9,780 nt of DNA from the sequence record NC_035464.1; one strand, written 5' to 3'. The notes below the pieces were generated by a model. The model was not told the origin of the DNA and searched no databases. It worked only from the letters and a program-made list of their open reading frames with translations. Made by a program: the position numbers and the translations under genes. Position 1 is the stretch's first letter. Each line of letters begins with the position of its first letter. Positions 3,244 to 9,780 of this stretch are shown here, in pieces.

Positions 3244-3366
3244 ATGATTGAACTGGGGGTGGGTACGTACTACCCCATGGTACAATACCGTCTTACCAGT
3301 CTCCCAGAGGAACAGATAAAGAGGGCGTATAAAATCATAAGGGATGAGGTGAAAACGTGGCCATAG
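3244..3366 (+). CDS. Small hypothetical protein, 40 aa (MIELGVGTYYPMVQYRLTSLPEEQIKRAYKIIRDEVKTWP); not in the ORF track
   Basis: Translated by hand. It fills the gap between two genes, looks helical and amphipathic, overlaps the next GTG start and contains that gene's RBS. The true start may lie upstream (see findings). Confidence 0.7.
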   Translation: MIELGVGTYYPMVQYRLTSLPEEQIKRAYKIIRDEVKTWP

Positions 3367-3674
3367 TCCATGAGGAGGTAACGTTTCATACTGAAGTGGA
3401 TGATGAGAGCGTAGAGGCAATCAGGAGGATCATAAGGGACCAGTGTGGAGAAAACCCAAAGCCTGAATGTTGGGGCCCGTTGGTGTGGTCCATGTTCGAC
3501 AGCGTGGCCCGTGCCATCCCGTGCCCAAAGTGCCGAGGGGAGGCACTGGAATTCCTGACCTTTTTGCATGATTTAATTAACATACAGAAGGGTAGTGCTA
3601 TATACAATACCCCGCAATTCCTTAGGAAGAAAAAGGAAGAGATACTGAGCCTACTCAGGACCCGAGGGATATAA
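3357..3674 (+). CDS. Miniature Erv1/Alr-like (poxvirus E10-type) sulfhydryl oxidase, 105 aa
   Basis: GTG start after GAGGTGA (3346-3352). Motifs NPKPECWGPLVW, IPCPKCR and FLHDLINIQKG match the Erv signature WGxxxW...PCxxC...HNxVNxxxG. The CDS is well supported; the function is inferred (about 0.65). Confidence 0.9.
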   Translation: MAIVHEEVTFHTEVDDESVEAIRRIIRDQCGENPKPECWGPLVWSMFDSVARAIPCPKCRGEALEFLTFLHDLINIQKGSAIYNTPQFLRKKKEEILSLLRTRGI

Positions 3675-3712: not shown

Positions 3713-3979
3713 ATGGTGTCCAATAGAGAACTCGCCAAAAGGCTCAGCCAGTCGGCCAGGGAGGCGTGGAATTCAGAGGAGGGCATGAGGATCAGAGAGG
3801 AGCTAAGTGCAGACTCTGCCTCCTATGGGGCGTGTCTGAGGAGAGTCATGGAAAGTGGAGGAGGCAGTCGTGGTTACAAGGATTGCGCGAGGAGGTCAGG
3901 AATAGGTACGGCGTTTGCCAGTGTCTGGGGGTCTACAAAGGCCTATGGTAGGCCGATGGTGGAAGTAGTAGCGAGGTGA
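3713..3979 (+). CDS. Basic, helical 88-aa protein; candidate genome-coating nucleoprotein
   Basis: ATG start; first gene behind a strong TATA box; Arg/Ser/Gly-rich with two Cys. The function is inferred from position and charge. Confidence 0.88.
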   Translation: MVSNRELAKRLSQSAREAWNSEEGMRIREELSADSASYGACLRRVMESGGGSRGYKDCARRSGIGTAFASVWGSTKAYGRPMVEVVAR

Positions 3980-3984
3980 CCTAG

Positions 3985-4314
3985 GTGGACTTCTCCAGAC
4001 AAACGTGGGAGGGGCCAGTGGCTGTTGGCGTCGGCGGGTACGTGTGGAACAAGGTAAAGGGGAACACGCAAGTTCAGACGTTCGTGAGCAAGGTAGGTGG
4101 CAAGACGAATGCAGGGCTCATCTTAGTGGCCCTAGGCGTAGTCGCTAAGGCATACAAACCCGAGTCAGAAGCCATGAATATACTGGGGTACCTGTTGGCG
4201 GGACTCGGTGCGGGGGCACTCGGTGACGACTTGCCCGCCACTGGGTCACAGGCGACGTTTACGAATAAAAGCCCAGAGTACCCTAGTCCAGTTAGTGGGG
4301 TGAACGTGCTGTGA
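3985..4314 (+). CDS. Membrane protein, 109 aa (candidate virion internal-membrane protein)
   Basis: GTG after RBS GAGGTGA (3973-3979); hydrophobic GxxxG-rich segments (AGLILVALGVVA; ILGYLLAGLGAGALG). Confidence 0.88.
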   Translation: MDFSRQTWEGPVAVGVGGYVWNKVKGNTQVQTFVSKVGGKTNAGLILVALGVVAKAYKPESEAMNILGYLLAGLGAGALGDDLPATGSQATFTNKSPEYPSPVSGVNVL

Positions 4315-4724
4315 AACTCTACATGAAAACGATTGAGATCCAATATTCCATCCCTGCGAGTGCACCATCCGAGTCACAGGTGCCTGGAGTGTTCATAGAC
4401 CTCTCCAGTGGCACTAGCCAAGGCCAACTCCAAGTCCCCGTGAACCAAGAGTGGGTCATCATAGACGTCTACAACAGGGGGTCTCAGGACGTCGGCGTAG
4501 ATGCCGTGGCGACGTTCACTAAGAACAGCGTCTCCAACGTCCTCACTACGGACCCAGTCTCATCCCTGAACATCTCGAACCCATCCAGACCAACCTACCC
4601 GCCAATACAGATGGCCCCAGGGACGATATTGACCTCCAAAGTCACTACGCTCACGTCCAACGGCACTAGTGCGGCCGTGGATAACCTATTCATAAAGGTC
4701 AAGATCATAGACTACTCGCAGTAA
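4311..4724 (+). CDS. Beta-rich 137-aa protein; candidate single jelly-roll major capsid protein
   Basis: GTGA-coupled start after GGGGTGA (4297-4303); alternative ATG 4323. Alternating hydrophobic beta patterns throughout (TIEIQYSI, EWVIIDVYN, DAVATFTK, TILTSKVTT, LFIKVKII), no TM segment, last gene of a strongly promoted operon. The MCP call is inference (about 0.5). Confidence 0.9.
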   Translation: MKLYMKTIEIQYSIPASAPSESQVPGVFIDLSSGTSQGQLQVPVNQEWVIIDVYNRGSQDVGVDAVATFTKNSVSNVLTTDPVSSLNISNPSRPTYPPIQMAPGTILTSKVTTLTSNGTSAAVDNLFIKVKIIDYSQ

Positions 4725-4772: not shown

Positions 4773-5450
4773 ATGGCATGCCAGACTATACAAGACCTAT
4801 CGATAGGCCCGTACACCATAGAATCGGGTCAGGTCTGTGTGGAGGGCACTACCTCAGGGACGGCTAGCCTGACTATGAAAGTGGGGCCGTTCACGTACAC
4901 CAAGACTATCCCATGGGGGGCGGTAAACCCCCAACAGACGTTGGGTACGTCCTCAGGGAGGGTCTACCTTATCGGGACGAACCCCCTGTCGTCACTCCTA
5001 GTGGACGACGTCCTAACGGTGGCTGAGTATGCACAGAAAGTGGCGTCGTACTTAGGGTACAGCGGTTCGTTTTCCATAGTGAACGTGGGTTTGACGAATG
5101 GCTCAGACTGCAACGACTGTGTAGTTTACGTGGACTACGTCGCCTCTTCTCCTCCTCTTGCGGTAGCCCTAGTGATCGCTCTCGTGATCGTTTTCGTCAT
5201 AGCTATCGTATTGGGTATCTATTTCATTTCGGCCGCGATAGAGAGTTTTCAGCCCGCACCTCCCACGCCCCCTCCTCCAGGGAGTCCCCCGTCCCTGTAC
5301 CAACAGTACTACCAGGAGTACGCCCAGTATTTGAAGGAGAAACAAACGGCCTCAATCACGGGAGGGGTATTCGGCACGTCCACGGCCCTAGTGGCGTTAG
5401 GGATAGCCATTTTAGCCTTCTTGGCGTTTACTGACCATGGTGGGAAGTGA
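4773..5450 (+). CDS. Membrane-anchored virion protein, 225 aa (beta-rich N-domain, two TM helices, poly-Pro linker)
   Basis: ATG start; TMs LAVALVIALVIVFVIAIVLGIYFI and TALVALGIAILAFLAF; PAPPTPPPPGSPP linker; four Cys including CNDC. Confidence 0.92.
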   Translation: MACQTIQDLSIGPYTIESGQVCVEGTTSGTASLTMKVGPFTYTKTIPWGAVNPQQTLGTSSGRVYLIGTNPLSSLLVDDVLTVAEYAQKVASYLGYSGSFSIVNVGLTNGSDCNDCVVYVDYVASSPPLAVALVIALVIVFVIAIVLGIYFISAAIESFQPAPPTPPPPGSPPSLYQQYYQEYAQYLKEKQTASITGGVFGTSTALVALGIAILAFLAFTDHGGK

Positions 5451-5734
5451 TGGTGTACCAGATATACGACGGGCAATACACGGTTTACCCCGTGGGAAAC
5501 CCCCAGGTCACGCTCATCAGGGTAGACGTAGCGGGGAGAGTGAAAATCATGATCCTCCCCACGGTGTCAGAGGCCCTTCAACTGACCCTGAACGGAAACT
5601 CAGGTTACCTGAACCAGGGAAACGTCCTCTCGGCGGGAAATTGGTACGAGTTCGAATACGTGAGTTGTGGGAAAGACATCATAAGCATAAATGGGACACA
5701 GCAAGGAGTTTACCTTAGGGTGATAGTGTATTGA
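5447..5734 (+). CDS. Small beta-rich protein, about 95 aa; candidate penton/vertex protein
   Basis: GTGA-coupled start (or ATG 5450); all-beta pattern (TLIRVDV, VKIMIL, LQLTLN, WYEFEYV, IISIN, VYLRVIVY); lies directly upstream of the spike candidate. Confidence 0.85.
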   Translation: MMVYQIYDGQYTVYPVGNPQVTLIRVDVAGRVKIMILPTVSEALQLTLNGNSGYLNQGNVLSAGNWYEFEYVSCGKDIISINGTQQGVYLRVIVY

Positions 5735-6750
5735 TTAGAGGTCAGATACACAAACTCTCCAAGTGGGAGTTAAGGGACTACGCTAGGACACTAGTCCCCG
5801 TCTTTGAATCCCACGAGGTGGACGGCACTAGGGACATGAAAATCGTGGACGCCGTGATATCGTACGCCATGAAAGGGACGAAACCCTGGCTGAGGAGGGG
5901 GTCAGCCCTCCAGGGCTTTATAGGGCCTAGGATGTCTGTCCTCGAGGGTTACCTCATCTTCCCCACGTCAGGTATTGAGCCCGTGACCATCCAGTCCACT
6001 ACCCTAGAGAACTCCTACCTAGTCCTAGATATCGTGGGGGCAGGTGGAGGAGGTGGTGGTGGAGGTGGTGGGAACACCACGGCCACTACCCCGTTCGCCC
6101 AGGGTGGTGGAGGTGGGGGAGACGGTGGCCGTCTCATTATCAGGACCCAGGGGCCACTAGTCTCTGGGACCCAGTTCACAGCCCAACTGGGAGGGCCAGG
6201 TGGGACAGGTGGAGGGACAGGTGCCACAGGGACACCAGGTTCAGCACCAAACGGGGCGACTCAGGTAGTCCTAGGGAACGGCACACTCACGCTCAGTGTG
6301 TCAGGTGCGTCAGCCCCTACCATGCCCCCGACAGCAGGAGGACAGGAGGCAGGAGGGTCAGGAGGTGCAGGAGGGTCAGCAGTGTTCACGTACTTGCCAA
6401 CGACGCCCATATTCTCGGCCATACAGTTGAACCCAAGGACGTCCTTCCTCTCGAATTACTCGGGCGTACTGGACCAGGGTATTGGTGGAGACGGCGTTGG
6501 GTCTGAGTACTTCACCCTGTCCAACGCCACGCCTATATTCGTCTCGACGCCACAAGGAACGAGGGTCACTGGGGGAAGCCCAGGGGGCACAGGCACCTCA
6601 GCCACGGCGAACGTCCCCTCTGGGGCAATCCCGCTCAGGGGGTCAGGTGCAGGAGGAGGAGGGGGACAGAACTCCTCTTCCGCCCCAACAGCGGGAGGGA
6701 ACGGCGGGTCTGGAGGGCCTGGACCTATCATTATCTTGGTGATAGGATGA
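5731..6750 (+). CDS. Glycine-rich spike/turret (receptor-binding) protein, 339 aa
   Basis: TTGA-coupled TTG start after GGGTGA (5718-5723). The pattern hDhVGAGGGGG...GGGGGxGG...GGxGGxGG...GSGAGGGGG...GGNGGSG resembles the glycine-rich domains of phage tail and spike proteins. Confidence 0.9.
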   Translation: MIRGQIHKLSKWELRDYARTLVPVFESHEVDGTRDMKIVDAVISYAMKGTKPWLRRGSALQGFIGPRMSVLEGYLIFPTSGIEPVTIQSTTLENSYLVLDIVGAGGGGGGGGGGNTTATTPFAQGGGGGGDGGRLIIRTQGPLVSGTQFTAQLGGPGGTGGGTGATGTPGSAPNGATQVVLGNGTLTLSVSGASAPTMPPTAGGQEAGGSGGAGGSAVFTYLPTTPIFSAIQLNPRTSFLSNYSGVLDQGIGGDGVGSEYFTLSNATPIFVSTPQGTRVTGGSPGGTGTSATANVPSGAIPLRGSGAGGGGGQNSSSAPTAGGNGGSGGPGPIIILVIG

Positions 6751-6967: not shown

Positions 6968-7378
6968 ATGAGCTGTCAGACATGTGGTCAGCAGGGCGTG
7001 TGTTACGTCCTGGAACACGTGGGTACTGAGCCCATCTATATAAACGGGCAACAGTACGGCCAGGGCGACTTTTGTTTCTCCTCCCCTGAGCTCACGATAG
7101 AATACCAGGGCGTACAGTACCAGATCGACATGTCCTACGCCCCCACAGTGCAGAACATATACGGGTGTTGTCCCTCAGGTACCACAGCCAAACTCACGAC
7201 GGTGACTACGATACAGGGACAGAACACTCCCATATTCGTCCCGTATGCCGTCCTAGTGTCTCAAGGTACCACGTCCACTAGTAGTACCACGCCTAGTGTC
7301 CTAAGTAAGGTACCGTGGTGGCTCATCATACTACTCGTCATACTGGGGGCTATACTCCTAGGAGGAGGAAACCCATGA
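6968..7378 (+). CDS. Cys-rich tail-anchored virion protein, 136 aa
   Basis: ATG 2 nt after the upstream stop; six Cys; Thr/Ser stalk; C-terminal TM WWLIILLVILGAILL. Confidence 0.9.
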   Translation: MSCQTCGQQGVCYVLEHVGTEPIYINGQQYGQGDFCFSSPELTIEYQGVQYQIDMSYAPTVQNIYGCCPSGTTAKLTTVTTIQGQNTPIFVPYAVLVSQGTTSTSSTTPSVLSKVPWWLIILLVILGAILLGGGNP

Positions 7379-8481
7379 ATTACACTTGGTACGTGCAGAA
7401 CCAAGACCCCTCGACGATCCAGTTCTGTGTCATGCAGTCTGGAGGGTATAACAACTGCACCTCAATACCAGGGAACAGCACAGAGCCGTTCACGATACCA
7501 GACATGGACGTGCAGATATATGGCACCCCCACGGGGTACTACGTGTACTACTCTAGCGTTGGGGTGAAGACTAGTACCAAGTCCCTCCCGTCATCAGGAT
7601 CAACGATCACGGTGCCCCCATACACGGGATGTGACCCCCTACTCACGCAAGGACAGGGGTACCCCCCACTCGTGCCGTGTTCGTCCCCGTTGATCTTCCT
7701 GAAGAGCGAGAGCACCCCTGCCATGTTTATCGAGAACTGGGGGGCAGAGACGTCAGGGTTTTCATACGGGTACGGGATAGCGGGGAGCCAATTGGCCATA
7801 GCGACAGGGCCAAACTGGGTATACTACCGACAGTACCCCCAGGCACAGGTATACCTTATCGGAAACTGGAAGGTGGTGAACGGAAACTACGTAGACATGG
7901 ACTCGGGGAAAACGTTCTGTGGGTGCCAGGGGAAGAGCGTGTACGTCATACCCACGTCTGACCTACCTGGGCCGTCCTCAGGGACTACGTCCACAGGGAC
8001 TAGTACCACGGGGACTTCCACGAGTACAACAGGGACTCCCACAGGGACGTCCACTCAGCAGACGACACAGCCCACGACAGGTATCCTGAACGTGGCTAAC
8101 CAGTGTTCGACGGGGGTAGTCGTGTACGCGGGAGGGAAAACGGCATACGCACCCCCATACCATTCCATCAGCCTAGAAGTACCCATCCCCACGGGGTATA
8201 CGCTTATTAGCCAGGGTCAGACAGTTGGTAAGGGGACGGTGTACCAGAGCGGGGAGTACGTGTCCCCAAGTTCTTGTCCCTCTGTTAGCCCTACACCCAG
8301 CCCTACCCCGACACCGTCCCCAACTGGGGGACAGACCACTTCCACGACTACGACTACCACGACTACCCAGACCACTTCAACACAGACTACCCAGAACACA
8401 CAGCCCCCAACGACGCCTAGCATGTCGTGGGGTCTTATCCTACTCTTGGTAATCCTGGGGGCACTAGCCCTCTCAAGTTAA
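7375..8481 (+). CDS. Multi-domain tail-anchored virion/adhesin-like protein, 368 aa
   Basis: Start moved from 7315 to the ATGA-coupled ATG 7375 after GGAGGAGG (7361-7368). Beta-rich domains separated by Thr/Ser/Pro stalks; eight Cys; C-terminal TM WGLILLLVILGALAL. Confidence 0.92.
   Translation: MNYTWYVQNQDPSTIQFCVMQSGGYNNCTSIPGNSTEPFTIPDMDVQIYGTPTGYYVYYSSVGVKTSTKSLPSSGSTITVPPYTGCDPLLTQGQGYPPLVPCSSPLIFLKSESTPAMFIENWGAETSGFSYGYGIAGSQLAIATGPNWVYYRQYPQAQVYLIGNWKVVNGNYVDMDSGKTFCGCQGKSVYVIPTSDLPGPSSGTTSTGTSTTGTSTSTTGTPTGTSTQQTTQPTTGILNVANQCSTGVVVYAGGKTAYAPPYHSISLEVPIPTGYTLISQGQTVGKGTVYQSGEYVSPSSCPSVSPTPSPTPTPSPTGGQTTSTTTTTTTTQTTSTQTTQNTQPPTTPSMSWGLILLLVILGALALSS
7981..8055 (+). repeat. Imperfect tandem GGGAC...CCAC repeats encoding GT(T/S)(S/T)T units
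   Basis: gggactacgtccaca / gggactagtaccacg / gggacttccacg / gggactcccaca / gggacgtccact. Confidence 0.75.
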
Positions 8482-9462: not shown

Positions 9463-9780
9463 TTGCGGAAGGTCGTGATGGGGGGGTTAAAATGCTTTTT
9501 GCCCTGTTGGAGAGAACCCTTCACTCTGAGGTTTACTTTCGGTTTGTGTCGTTAAGTGTACTTGCAGGGCGGGGCAGGGCGTATTATGGGCTGTAATTTG
9601 CTCATTCGCATTAGGACAAAAACCCCTGGGGTTAATAAGCTTTCATGCTAGGGGGGGTATTTAAACCCTCCCCGCGTTCAACTTGCGTGGTGATCCGTCA
9701 AACTGACGTGGCTTTTAAACCCCCTGCTCTGGGGGGGGTAGGCTAGGTCTCGCCCTCCCTTTCGGCATGGGGGGGGGGGG
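9463..9780 (-). repeat. Right inverted terminal repeat (318 bp)
   Basis: Reverse complement of 1-318 with two mismatches; ends in G12. Confidence 0.99.

Follow-up and report, generated by a model that had tools for sequence, protein, structure and literature searches.

A virus of hot-spring archaea is predicted to encode a shortened homolog of Erv/ALR oxidases that may catalyze disulfide formation

Introduction

Sulfhydryl oxidases of the Erv/ALR family (PF04777; ALR, 1OQC; Erv2p, 1JR8; Erv1, 4E0H) are viewed as proteins of eukaryotes and of large DNA viruses (PMC3509050, PMC10598087). Erv enzymes have the same fold "by definition" (PMC3509050), that is, a bundle of four helices, α1 to α4, accompanied by a perpendicular helix α5 (PMC3616962). 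In this fold, FAD is contacted by a Trp and a His on one face of α1, by a His and two Asn residues of α4, which face the adenine, and by KxxF/Y in the linker between α4 and α5, which reaches the phosphates and the adenine (PMC3616962). Many compact viral Ervs possess only the flavin-proximal disulfide, without a shuttle disulfide, and ASFV pB119L (PDB 3GWL) is of this compact kind (PMC3509050). The fold of pB119L is the complete five-helix one.

In poxviruses, the thiol oxidase E10 keeps the full-length Erv spacing and has an N-terminal hydrophobic helix. Disulfides are relayed from E10 by A2.5, a small helical viral protein with one redox-active Cys pair (CxxxC) that takes part in the oxidation of virion proteins. 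E10 itself (PF04805) is small (~95 aa) and is both an enzyme and associated with the virion (PMC10598087).

Intracellular disulfides abound in the proteins of hyperthermophilic Crenarchaeota and of the viruses that infect them, and the responsible catalyst has not yet been identified; for the viral proteins, a sulfhydryl oxidase of unknown origin is considered to be needed (PMC6842933). Our literature search found no description of an Erv enzyme in an archaeal virus, nor of a shortened form of such an enzyme. Here, we analyze a small protein of an archaeal virus, c105, which is predicted to be all-helical like the Erv/ALR enzymes and whose family shares with them the order of the sequence motifs. 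The carriers of this family are viruses of archaea and mobile elements of prokaryotes, in place of eukaryotes and their large DNA viruses.

Results

The c105 gene

The analyzed window, a stretch of 9,780 bp, is the complete genome of Metallosphaera turreted icosahedral virus (MTIV1), a virus of hot-spring archaea (100% identity to MF443783/NC_035464), and all coordinates given here refer to its plus strand. The gene c105 (3357..3674) is the first of the MTIV structural module and encodes a protein of 105 aa, deposited in GenBank as "structural protein c105" (ASO67390; YP_009408155), the annotation from which the virion location is taken. The called GTG start overlaps the end of ORF a40 and is supported by the conservation of the N-terminal residues in 23 close relatives sharing 75-100% identity, hereafter the MTIV clade. 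Within the clade, residues I3, H5, E6, F10, H11, E13, and D15 of the N-terminal tail (residues 1-15; 3357..3401) are invariant; the tail is modeled with low confidence and is missing from the wider family described below.

A preliminary description, made from the DNA letters without database searches, had interpreted c105 as a miniature sulfhydryl oxidase on the basis of several short motifs. Translation and codon positions bear out their placement, with W39-G-P-L-V-W44 at 3471..3488, P55-C56-P-K-C59-R60 at 3519..3536, H71-D72-L-I-N75 at 3567..3581, K78-G79 at 3588..3593, and the additional cysteines C30 and C38 at 3444..3446 and 3468..3470, respectively. The spacings singled out there as unusually short are correct as well, W44 being followed by 10 residues before P55 and C59 by 11 before H71. 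The motif residues are without exception invariant across the 23 close relatives.

The wider family of c105 relatives

An exhaustive profile search (E<=1e-3) yielded 91 diverse representatives that have in common an ungapped core of 57 residues, corresponding to residues 36-92 of c105 (3462..3632), with the consensus WGPxxWxxxH-x5-IPCxxCR-x10-HDxVNxKLGKPxYD and an identity of ~25% within the family. The carriers differ widely and include archaeal viruses and a phage-like contig of 208 kb, and there are also fusions to a DNA methylase; the family occurs across viruses of archaea and of bacteria and in prokaryotic mobile elements. It is unnamed in Pfam, PHROG, NCBIfam, and the source annotations, and a search of PHROGs with c105 matched solely the family built on c105 itself. 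An N-terminal hydrophobic helix is present in 21 of 89 family members, and c105 is without a membrane helix.

A degenerate DNA pattern for HDxVNxKLGKP was used to find further metagenomic and genomic loci. Two loci from the genome scan were set aside, one as a chance match to the DNA pattern (L012) and the other as a degenerate fragment (L013), and a profile-guided scan of viral contigs with one diverse alignment gave 151 pattern matches and 0 confirmed relatives.

Sequence relation to Erv/ALR oxidases

On its own, c105 is not significantly similar to any annotated protein. When compared with Pfam, it has its only match to Pox_E10, at E=0.16 and 12.3 bits (cutoff, 27), and none to Evr1_Alr, and a profile of the MTIV clade aligns with ALR at an hhalign probability of 2%. 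The matches of this clade profile to the RNA polymerase alpha C-terminal domain in the PDB (E 0.6-1.5) are not significant and do not recur with wider profiles, and the "PCPxC" matches of c105 to APOBEC3 proteins in a phmmer search of the PDB (E ~0.6-1) were discarded as motif noise.

With the core profile of the family searched against the whole PDB (177,635 sequences), the best 14 matches are all Erv-family oxidases, with E-values from 2.8e-5 to 6e-3. The best of them is pB119L (2.8e-5), the first block of which differs little from the consensus of the family, and it is accompanied by plant Erv1 (6.4e-5), ALR (9.1e-5), yeast Erv1 (1.1e-4), and Erv2 (2.2e-4). Each Erv match consists of three collinear blocks, and the motif order common to the Erv/ALR and c105 families is G-x-x-x-W-x-x-x-H, (I/Y)-P-C-x-x-C, and H-(N/D)-x-V-N-x-x-L-G-K-P-x-(F/Y)-D. 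In the profile alignments of the wider family, the WGxxxW, PCxxC, and H-x-x-x-N elements of the preliminary description are indeed genuine Erv/ALR motifs in the correct order. The resemblance of c105 to Erv, as judged by sequence comparison, exceeds chance solely via this wider family.

Profile-profile comparison gave the same picture. The family aligns with ALR at an hhalign probability of 96.2% (E=2.4e-9), with gaps of 23 and 17 residues, and with two full-length metagenomic Evr1_Alr proteins at 97.9-98.0% (E ~1e-13); the gaps are of 23 and 22 residues against the one that scores 57 bits on Pfam Evr1_Alr and of 16 and 15 residues against the other, which scores 27.5 bits. The loss of two stretches relative to canonical Erv domains, suspected previously from the spacings, is thus recovered as gaps at two sites against three targets at 96-98% probability. 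The core measures 57 residues in c105 compared with ~93 in Erv/ALR, helix α2 and the α3-α4 hairpin being absent, and residues 18-40 and 59-73 of pB119L are without counterpart in c105. Homology of the c105 core with the Erv/ALR FAD-binding domain, minus two internal stretches, is well supported by these profile comparisons.

None of the 91 family members attains a Pfam gathering score, which is 27.6 bits for PF04777 (Evr1_Alr) and 27 bits for PF04805 (Pox_E10). Matches below these thresholds are found to Evr1_Alr in 33 of the 91 (best E=9.7e-4) and to Pox_E10 in 22 of the 91 (best E=4.2e-4), the weak resemblance to E10 being located around the PCxxC helix. The closest full-length relatives of the family are likely the "HD-type" Evr1_Alr proteins from metagenomes (L011, L019, L023, and L026), which contain identical WGPxxW, IPCxxCR, and HDxVNxKLGKP motifs and align with the family at an hhalign probability of 98%. 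Where the two deletions lie, these proteins are longer by 16-23 and 15-22 residues, and their scores against Pfam Evr1_Alr are 27.5-59 bits.

Predicted structure of c105

The AlphaFold2 model of c105 built from a deep alignment (pLDDT 91.2, pTM 0.73) contains four helices spanning residues 16-30, 36-53, 57-77, and 85-102; it replaced an earlier model from a shallow alignment, which had a pTM of 0.59 and no significant Foldseek match. Helix 1 (residues 16-30; 3402..3446), which ends in C30, is specific to the clade and has no Erv counterpart. Helix 2 (residues 36-53; 3462..3515) corresponds to Erv α1 and holds W39-G40-P41, the invariant W44 in the position of the α1 Trp, and Asp48. Helix 3 (residues 57-77; 3525..3587) is predicted as one long helix, with the α3-type CxxC at its start and the α4-type H71-D72-x-x-N75 at its end; both the model and the hhalign alignments indicate that the α3/α4 hairpin loop of Erv is deleted in it. 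The C-terminal helix 4 (residues 85-102; 3609..3662) completes the predicted four-helix bundle.

The model is not superposable on Erv structures in Foldseek comparisons (TM 0.23-0.42; rmsd 4-14 Å, mostly >9 Å; TM 0.31-0.34 for pB119L), and the E-values of the Erv matches are at least 0.23 against the PDB and at least 0.08 against BFVD. In both libraries, the ranks next after the self-match are occupied mostly by Erv oxidases. Of the two kinds of match to Erv that the preliminary description had named as a check, the profile match is obtained, via the wider family, and the structural match is not, nor are the Pfam thresholds reached.

In the model, C56-P-K-C59 is situated at the N terminus of a helix, as is the active-site CxxC of Erv. 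Along helix 57-77, the separation of the CxxC from H71 and N75 would amount to ~18-27 Å, so that the canonical Erv flavin pocket would not be reproducible within one chain.

Conservation of the flavin-contact residues

The residues that contact FAD in Erv coincide with the most conserved columns of the c105 family, as assessed over 86 sequences. W44 and both cysteines of the CxxC, the counterpart of the α3 active-site disulfide, are conserved in all 86, and within the counterpart of the α4 H-N-x-x-N adenine-contact motif, H71 is found in 83, D72 in 86, and N75 in 85. The first α4 Asn of Erv is accordingly an Asp (Asp72) in the entire set. The same H-D variant is present in full-length proteins whose scores of 38-59 bits exceed the Pfam Evr1_Alr threshold, and Asp72 is therefore compatible with Erv membership.

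The KxxF/Y linker of Erv, also among these conserved columns, has its counterpart in a family consensus G-K-P-x-Y (K in 72 and Y/F in 62 of 86); in c105 (K78-G79-S80-A-I-Y83; 3588..3605), Tyr83 is kept, Ser80 occupies the Lys position, and Lys78 lies two residues before it. The position of the α1 His is occupied by His in 47, Glu in 22, Asp in 8, and Asn in 4 of the 86 sequences, being His in the more canonical homologs SPV3 ORF36 and MTIV3 ORF18 and Asp48 in c105. Hence, c105 and its close clade deviate at two flavin-contact positions, with His replaced by Asp48 and Lys by Ser80.

The C30/C38 pair and zinc

C30 and C38 (C30-x7-C38; 3444..3470) bracket the short loop between helices 1 and 2, both of which are well ordered (pLDDT >90). 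The pair never varies within the MTIV clade and also occurs in the MTIV3 and SPV3 homologs; it is found in 11 of 89 family members overall. By helix topology, C56/C59 would lie at one end of the helical hairpin and this pair at the other. A role as shuttle disulfide had been proposed for C30/C38; their occurrence in 11 of 89 members and their predicted location at the opposite end of the hairpin leave the proposal weak. Given its restriction to 11 of 89 relatives, the pair looks like a clade-specific staple and not a general shuttle.

The same pattern of conservation bears on metal binding. A Cys4 zinc site was dropped from consideration as C30/C38 are not conserved family-wide, C56 and C59 being the only family-wide conserved cysteines, and c105 has no match to a zinc-finger family. 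Coordination of zinc by C56, C59, and H71, which had been put forward as an alternative to the oxidase, is unlikely in one chain because a single continuous helix is predicted to carry these residues, at distances of 12-15 positions.

Genomic neighborhood

Downstream of c105, the genome encodes the virion structural protein b88 (3713..3979), with 2 Cys, and the capsid protein c137 (4311..4724), which has weak similarity to SPV1 VP4. The order of c105, two small genes, and the capsid gene is kept in MTIV3, SPV3, and the metagenomic contig L003, and in MTIV-like viruses c105 is a conserved core gene that heads the block of structural genes. Farther along are c225 (4773..5450), which has 4 Cys and is hydrophobic in a C-terminal segment; b136 (6968..7378), with 6 Cys; and a368 (7375..8481), which has 8 Cys plus a region rich in Thr. 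Together with b88, these three proteins are candidate substrates of c105. The Cys count is even in 9 of the 11 Cys-containing MTIV proteins (binomial p=0.033).

Discussion

By its sequence, the c105 family is a compact and hitherto unnamed variant of Erv/ALR. The explanation that we favor, with a probability of roughly 0.55, is that c105 is a radically shortened Erv/ALR homolog that probably catalyzes disulfide formation in virion proteins rich in cysteine. The protein has retained the Trp-bearing α1 helix, the CxxC with which a helix begins, the His/Asn motif of α4, and the aromatic residue of the linker, and has lost helix α2 (~23 residues) and the α3-α4 hairpin (~17 residues). As a consequence, one long helix of a new four-helix bundle is predicted to start with the CxxC and to finish with the H-D-x-x-N motif. 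With C56 and C59 as the redox-active pair, c105 would most likely introduce disulfides into b88, c225, b136, and a368, or relay disulfides to them, within the cytoplasm of its aerobic host, which grows at 80 °C. A bound flavin would probably accept the electrons and hand them on to O2, in the manner of poxvirus E10 or ASFV pB119L. The components of this explanation differ in strength: redox activity of c105 appears fairly probable, FAD binding falls somewhat short of even odds, and completion of the active site across an antiparallel dimer is doubtful.

A stronger proposal, which we consider less likely than not, sees in the 57-residue core a minimal sulfhydryl oxidase, hitherto unrecognized, that binds flavin and is sufficient by itself. 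Two helices would have been fused into one when the α3-α4 hairpin was lost, and the site might be rebuilt through an antiparallel homodimer, with the CxxC of one chain placed beside W44, H71, D72, and N75 of the other in a domain-swap-like manner, or through an extended FAD lying along the groove of the hairpin. Jumbo-phage-like genomes would have taken up the same minimal enzyme, as would polyvalent proteins encoded by mobile elements of bacteria.

The loss of ~40% of the Erv domain without recovery of the canonical fold, along with Asp48 and Ser80 at two flavin-contact positions, would suit a descendant of Erv that has given up both cofactor and catalysis and persists as a small helical part of the virion, for example, beneath the capsid or on an internal membrane, with its cysteines forming stabilizing disulfides. 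The GenBank label of c105 as a structural protein fits such a purely structural role equally well, and the C30-x7-C38 pair resembles a staple of a helix-loop-helix. However, the residues that are invariant at ~25% identity (W, H, D, N, and CxxC) are the polar ligand contacts of Erv and not core-packing positions, and the diversity of the carriers, from archaeal viruses to a phage-like contig of 208 kb and DNA methylase fusions, makes a common role in virion architecture unlikely. Association with the virion is, moreover, compatible with catalysis, since the virion-associated E10 is also an enzyme (PMC10598087). We regard such an exaptation as rather unlikely.

Somewhat less probable still is a flavin-free thiol-disulfide relay or isomerase, in which the CxxC would swap disulfides with virion proteins and a host system would carry out the oxidation, in a manner comparable to A2.5. 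The invariant CxxC at a helix N terminus, the variability of the α1 His position (H in 47, E in 22, and D in 8 of 86), and the modeled geometry, which would preclude the canonical flavin pocket in one chain, are all in line with such a relay. It leaves unexplained, however, the strict conservation of H71, D72, N75, and G-K-P-x-Y, the counterparts of FAD contacts in Erv. The Erv flavin-contact motifs kept in c105 are missing from A2.5, and the likeness drawn here between the two proteins concerns their small size, their helical character, and the Cys pair.

A metal-binding protein devoid of redox function, in which C56 and C59 would hold zinc together with a His, either H71 of a partner chain or H5 or H11 of the tail, is very unlikely. 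The CPxC does adjoin conserved His residues, the MTIV clade shows no variation at H5 and H11, and the disordered tail could, by topology, reach the CxxC end of the bundle; however, only two cysteines are conserved family-wide, C30/C38 and H5/H11 being clade-specific, C56/C59 and H71 are 12-15 residues apart along one helix, and the significant database relatives are all flavoenzymes, with zinc proteins numbering 0. Finally, a chance resemblance of three short motifs in a helical protein unrelated to Erv, as might be suspected from c105 alone (E=0.16 to Pox_E10, APOBEC3 PCxxC noise as the sole single-sequence PDB matches, and 2% for the clade profile against ALR), appears effectively refuted by the family profile, whose best 14 of 177,635 PDB sequences are all Erv, by three independent Erv targets, which hhalign aligns at probabilities of 96-98% and with block boundaries that agree, and by the membership in Pfam Evr1_Alr of full-length proteins with identical motifs.

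If c105 is inactive, it would represent a clear example of an enzyme scaffold exapted into a virion component. If it is active, c105 and its relatives would provide a candidate, open to direct testing, for oxidative folding driven by a virus at 80 °C and the smallest Erv-type catalytic unit, revealing which parts of the fold are dispensable, and might serve as a thermostable helper for the production of disulfide-bonded proteins in the bacterial cytoplasm. Should the core prove to be a minimal oxidase, MTIV-like viruses would bring their own catalyst for cytoplasmic disulfides at 80 °C, and the reach of Erv enzymes would extend beyond eukaryotes and large DNA viruses to the viruses of archaea and bacteria.

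A compact protein family related to Erv/ALR sulfhydryl oxidases

The virion protein c105 of Metallosphaera turreted icosahedral virus MTIV1 (105 aa; 3357-3674, + strand) had been proposed in the preliminary description to be a miniature Erv1/Alr-type sulfhydryl oxidase. All of the residues named in support of this proposal, C30, C38, W39-G-P-L-V-W44, P55-C56-P-K-C59-R60, H71-D-L-I-N75, and K78-G79, were confirmed by translation and codon positions. So were the short spacings, W44 being separated from P55 by 10 residues and C59 from H71 by 11. None of the named residues varies among 23 metagenomic relatives with 75-100% identity. With c105 alone, Pfam returned only Pox_E10 (residues 50-67; E = 0.16; 12.3 bits versus a cutoff of 27), PHROGs contained nothing beyond the family built from c105 itself, and the sole PDB matches in a phmmer search were to the "PCPxC" of APOBEC3, which we regard as noise. 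The profile of the c105 clade produced insignificant matches to the RNA polymerase alpha-CTD and, in hhalign, a probability of 2% against ALR, yet with the same block alignment as that obtained with the wider family. Judged from c105 alone, the connection to Erv would remain an unproven motif resemblance.

An exhaustive HMM search with the c105-clade profile against 1.84 billion representative proteins identified 91 representatives at E ≤ 1e-3 (hereafter, the mini family), with ~25-45% identity over a 57-residue core that is gap-free in nearly all members: [W/F]-G-P-x-x-W-x-x-x-H-x5-I-P-C-x-x-C-R-x10-H-D-x-V-N-x-K-L-G-K-P-x-Y-D-x-x-N-F. Within this core (c105 residues 36-92), G40, W44, C56, C59, and D72 are invariant, and P55, H71, and N75 are at least 90% conserved. 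Because the core is ungapped in nearly all members, the short spacing is a fixed, defining feature of the family rather than an accident of a single gene. Pfam, PHROG, NCBIfam, and the source annotations provide no label for the members except "hypothetical" or "structural," and the search has uncovered a family without annotation that is spread across prokaryotic viruses.

When the 57-column core profile was searched against all 177,635 distinct PDB sequences, the top 14 matches were all Erv-family sulfhydryl oxidases, including ASFV pB119L (E = 2.8e-5), Arabidopsis Erv1 (E = 6.4e-5), rat and human ALR (E = 9e-5 to 2e-4), yeast Erv1 (E = 1.1e-4), and Erv2p (E = 2.2e-4). Every Erv match involved the same three collinear blocks, and the full-length profile gave the same picture. 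Against a profile of 18 ALR proteins from vertebrates, profile-profile alignment yielded a probability of 96.2% (E = 2.4e-9; 50 columns), with two gaps of 23 and 17 residues. Searching for HDxVNxKLGKP with a degenerate DNA pattern recovered full-length relatives in metagenomes, in a viral contig of 76 kb, and in a Verrucomicrobia MAG, which share the WGPxxW, IPCxxCR, and HDxVN motifs with the mini family but have normal Erv spacing; four of these relatives exceed the Pfam Evr1_Alr cutoff (38-59 bits), and a fifth, L026, scores just below it (27.5 versus 27.6 bits). The mini-family profile matches them with 97.9-98.0% probability (E ~1e-13), the two deletions spanning 16-23 and 15-22 residues. 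Furthermore, sub-threshold matches to Evr1_Alr and Pox_E10 were detected in 33 and 22 of the 91 members, respectively. Considering the top PDB matches, the profile-profile comparisons, the full-length relatives, and the sub-threshold Pfam matches together, we regard homology to Erv/ALR as established and put the probability that the mini family, including c105, descends from Erv proteins at roughly 0.9. The early suggestion that an Erv-like motif set persists with two stretches of the helical bundle missing is therefore upheld by the profile evidence: the first missing segment corresponds to the end of alpha1 together with helix alpha2, and the second runs from the C-terminal half of alpha3 through the hairpin loop into the beginning of alpha4.

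One full-length Pfam Evr1_Alr protein, encoded in a Verrucomicrobiaceae MAG (L014, 3704-4081, − strand; 37.9 bits), has N-C-P-C in place of the active-site CxxC and would be a bacterial Erv whose active site is either atypical or no longer functional.

Predicted structure and putative flavin site

The confident AlphaFold2 model of c105 obtained with a deep alignment (pLDDT 91.2, pTM 0.73) consists of four helices (residues 16-30, 36-53, 57-77, and 85-102), with the CxxC capping helix 3 at its N-terminus, as it does in other redox CxxC proteins, Erv included. After the self-hit, Erv oxidases lead both libraries searched with Foldseek, accounting for 20 of the best 24 matches in PDB and, as NCLDV "sulfhydryl oxidase," for six of ranks 2-8 in the viral BFVD. 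The anticipated structural match was borne out in this ranking but not in global superposition, which is poor (E = 0.08-5; TM-score 0.23-0.42; rmsd mostly >9 Å). Thus, the model suggests that c105 is Erv-like in local structure and sequence order but not in global packing, as might be expected from two deletions.

Removal of the alpha3/alpha4 hairpin would place the CxxC and H-D-x-x-N at opposite ends of one ~30-Å helix, and removal of alpha2 would allow the alpha1-like helix to pair directly, in antiparallel orientation, with this long helix. In the resulting hairpin, W39/G40, H71/N75, and the C30/C38 loop would lie at one end and the CxxC at the other, so that the canonical pocket could not form within one chain. 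Deletion of a hinge loop is a classic route to domain swaps, and the active site could be completed in an antiparallel dimer, where the CxxC of one chain would meet the Trp/His/Asn cluster of the other, an arrangement that we consider rather unlikely; alternatively, binding of extended FAD along the conserved groove is conceivable.

The hallmarks of the Erv flavin site are a Trp and a His on one face of alpha1, the alpha3 CxxC adjoining the isoalloxazine, a His and two Asn of alpha4 on the adenine, and a linker, KxxF/Y, that lies close to the phosphates and to the adenine (PMC3616962). Across 86 mini-family sequences, the alpha1 Trp (W44 in c105) and the CxxC (C56, C59) are universal, the alpha4 His (H71) is found in 83 and the second alpha4 Asn (N75) in 85, and the first Asn position is occupied by Asp in all 86 (D72), a residue also present at this position in full-length Pfam Evr1_Alr members. 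The alpha1 His position is more variable (H in 47, E in 22, D in 8, and N in 4; Asp48 in c105); the linker Lys is retained in 72 of the 86 sequences (Ser80 in c105, with Lys78 two residues earlier), and the linker aromatic is Y or F in 62 (Y83). SPV3 ORF36 and MTIV3 ORF18, from cultivated viruses, have the canonical His, Lys, and Tyr, and, by this comparison, the c105 clade departs furthest from the canonical pattern among the three lineages of cultivated archaeal viruses. The best-conserved columns of this highly divergent family are the very polar residues by which Erv enzymes hold FAD, which argues for retention of a ligand site.

A shuttle disulfide had also been proposed for C30/C38. The pair is present and invariant in the MTIV clade and appears as Cx6-7C in MTIV3 and SPV3, but such a pair occurs in just 11 of 89 family members and, in the monomer model, flanks a loop of five residues that joins two well-ordered helices and is distant from the CxxC, and a shuttle role does not hold as a family feature. 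A structural staple typical of hyperthermophile proteins would be the simpler reading, with a shuttle role, especially in a dimer, being conceivable; many compact viral Ervs lack a shuttle (PMC3509050).

The mini domain in other carriers

The mini domain is accompanied by an N-terminal hydrophobic helix in 21 of 89 members. Two members, one encoded on a 208-kb phage-like contig with dense small genes on one strand, an Amidase_2 gene, and glycosyltransferases (L048, 10001-10417) and the other at locus L049 (908-1309), each lie directly downstream of a PP-binding (acyl-carrier-like) gene. In the members P0027, P0050, and P0062, a C-terminal Cys-rich extension, absent from c105, ends with the conserved motif G-V-N-P-(Y/F/W)-A-(V/I)-C-x-A and could be a second redox module. 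In a 608-aa protein (L018, 5276-7099, − strand, and L031), a mini-Erv-like domain at the N-terminus, whose CxxC is replaced by C-G-C, is joined to a D12-class N6-adenine DNA methyltransferase, and an AAA_5 ATPase gene is located nearby.

The domain was also found beside or inside polyvalent-protein-type genes (SNF2 + ddrB-ParB + JAB). In a 27.8-kb groundwater contig (L038), a mini-Erv-like gene lies near that for a 1,347-aa SNF2 + ddrB-ParB + JAB polyvalent-type protein, in L009/L010 a Prok-JAB gene immediately follows the mini-Erv gene, and L021 encodes a 905-aa fusion; these arrangements suggest that conflict systems of mobile elements have recruited the domain. Such a mini domain is not mentioned in the key publication about polyvalent proteins.

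In an SPV3 isolate fragment (OP999019; L047, 180-368), a further c105-like match (residues 16-79, 42% identity) falls in a region whose only annotated ORF encodes 41 aa on the opposite strand, and is probably an unannotated paralog or fragment.

Genomic setting and candidate substrates

The sequence is 100% identical to MF443783/NC_035464, the complete genome of MTIV1, a virus that originates from a Yellowstone spring (80 °C, pH 2.1). Its 21 annotated genes, all on the + strand, are flanked by 318-nt inverted terminal repeats (1-318 and 9463-9780; 99% complementary), in agreement with the published account, in which the MTIV genome is linear and carries ITRs. Annotated in RefSeq as "virion structural protein" and originally in GenBank as "structural protein c105," c105 heads a series of consecutive genes with structural annotations (c105, b88, a109, and c137). 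Its GTG start region (3357-3366) shares 10 nt with the 3' end of ORF a40; this start is supported by relatives, in which residues 1-15 are conserved and which in some cases likewise begin with a GTG (Val) codon. The order of c105, two small genes, and the capsid gene is kept in MTIV, MTIV3, SPV3, and an 8.9-kb MTIV-like metagenomic contig, indicating that c105 is a core gene of the MTIV-like virus group.

The c137 product (4311-4724) shows a sub-threshold match to the SPV1 VP4 capsid/major capsid protein family (PF25646; E = 7.3e-5; 22.9 bits versus 27), a weak similarity that links MTIV capsids to Portogloboviridae-type capsid proteins; the same weak capsid-family match occurs in contig L003, three genes downstream of the c105 homolog. 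Elsewhere in the genome, c125 (2370-2747), with CxxC pairs at C26/C29 and C98/C101, shows a C2H2-like zinc-finger pattern, as H-x4-H follows the C26/C29 pair, and weakly matches DUF7576 below the cutoff (E = 7.5e-5), and the structural protein a339 (5731-6750) has long Gly runs and matches Pfam Gly_rich_2 exactly at the cutoff (24.3 bits).

Ten of the 21 MTIV proteins are devoid of cysteine, nine contain an even number (2, 2, 2, 4, 4, 4, 4, 6, and 8), and two have one. The even counts in 9 of the 11 Cys-containing proteins (binomial p = 0.033) suggest pervasive disulfide bonding; hyperthermophile proteomes rich in disulfides are known for this bias. Among the Cys-rich proteins are b88, a structural protein, and c225, b136, and a368, which are probable surface or membrane proteins, and all four are plausible candidate substrates. 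Given that the MTIV host is aerobic, O2 would be available as the electron acceptor.

Classification and implications

The profile relationship and the CxxC connect c105 to the Erv family, but the curated Pfam thresholds are not reached, the defining fold is not reproduced, and three residue hallmarks are only partly retained. Hence, we do not assign c105 to the Erv enzymes but consider it a truncated Erv homolog that would define a new compact variant. In its working, it may come closest to the compact viral Erv oxidases ASFV pB119L and poxvirus E10, which, like c105, are small, with a single CxxC, and which act on virion morphogenesis. The CxxC of c105 is probably redox-active, and a role as an FAD-dependent oxidase is a more tentative proposal.

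A review (PMC6842933) explicitly leaves open the identity of the sulfhydryl oxidase responsible for disulfide bonds in proteins of crenarchaeal viruses. In the literature searched, the original MTIV paper excluded, neither an Erv-like protein of an archaeal virus nor a family of truncated Erv proteins was described, and the present finding comes as a surprise both in archaeal virology and in work on Erv enzymes.
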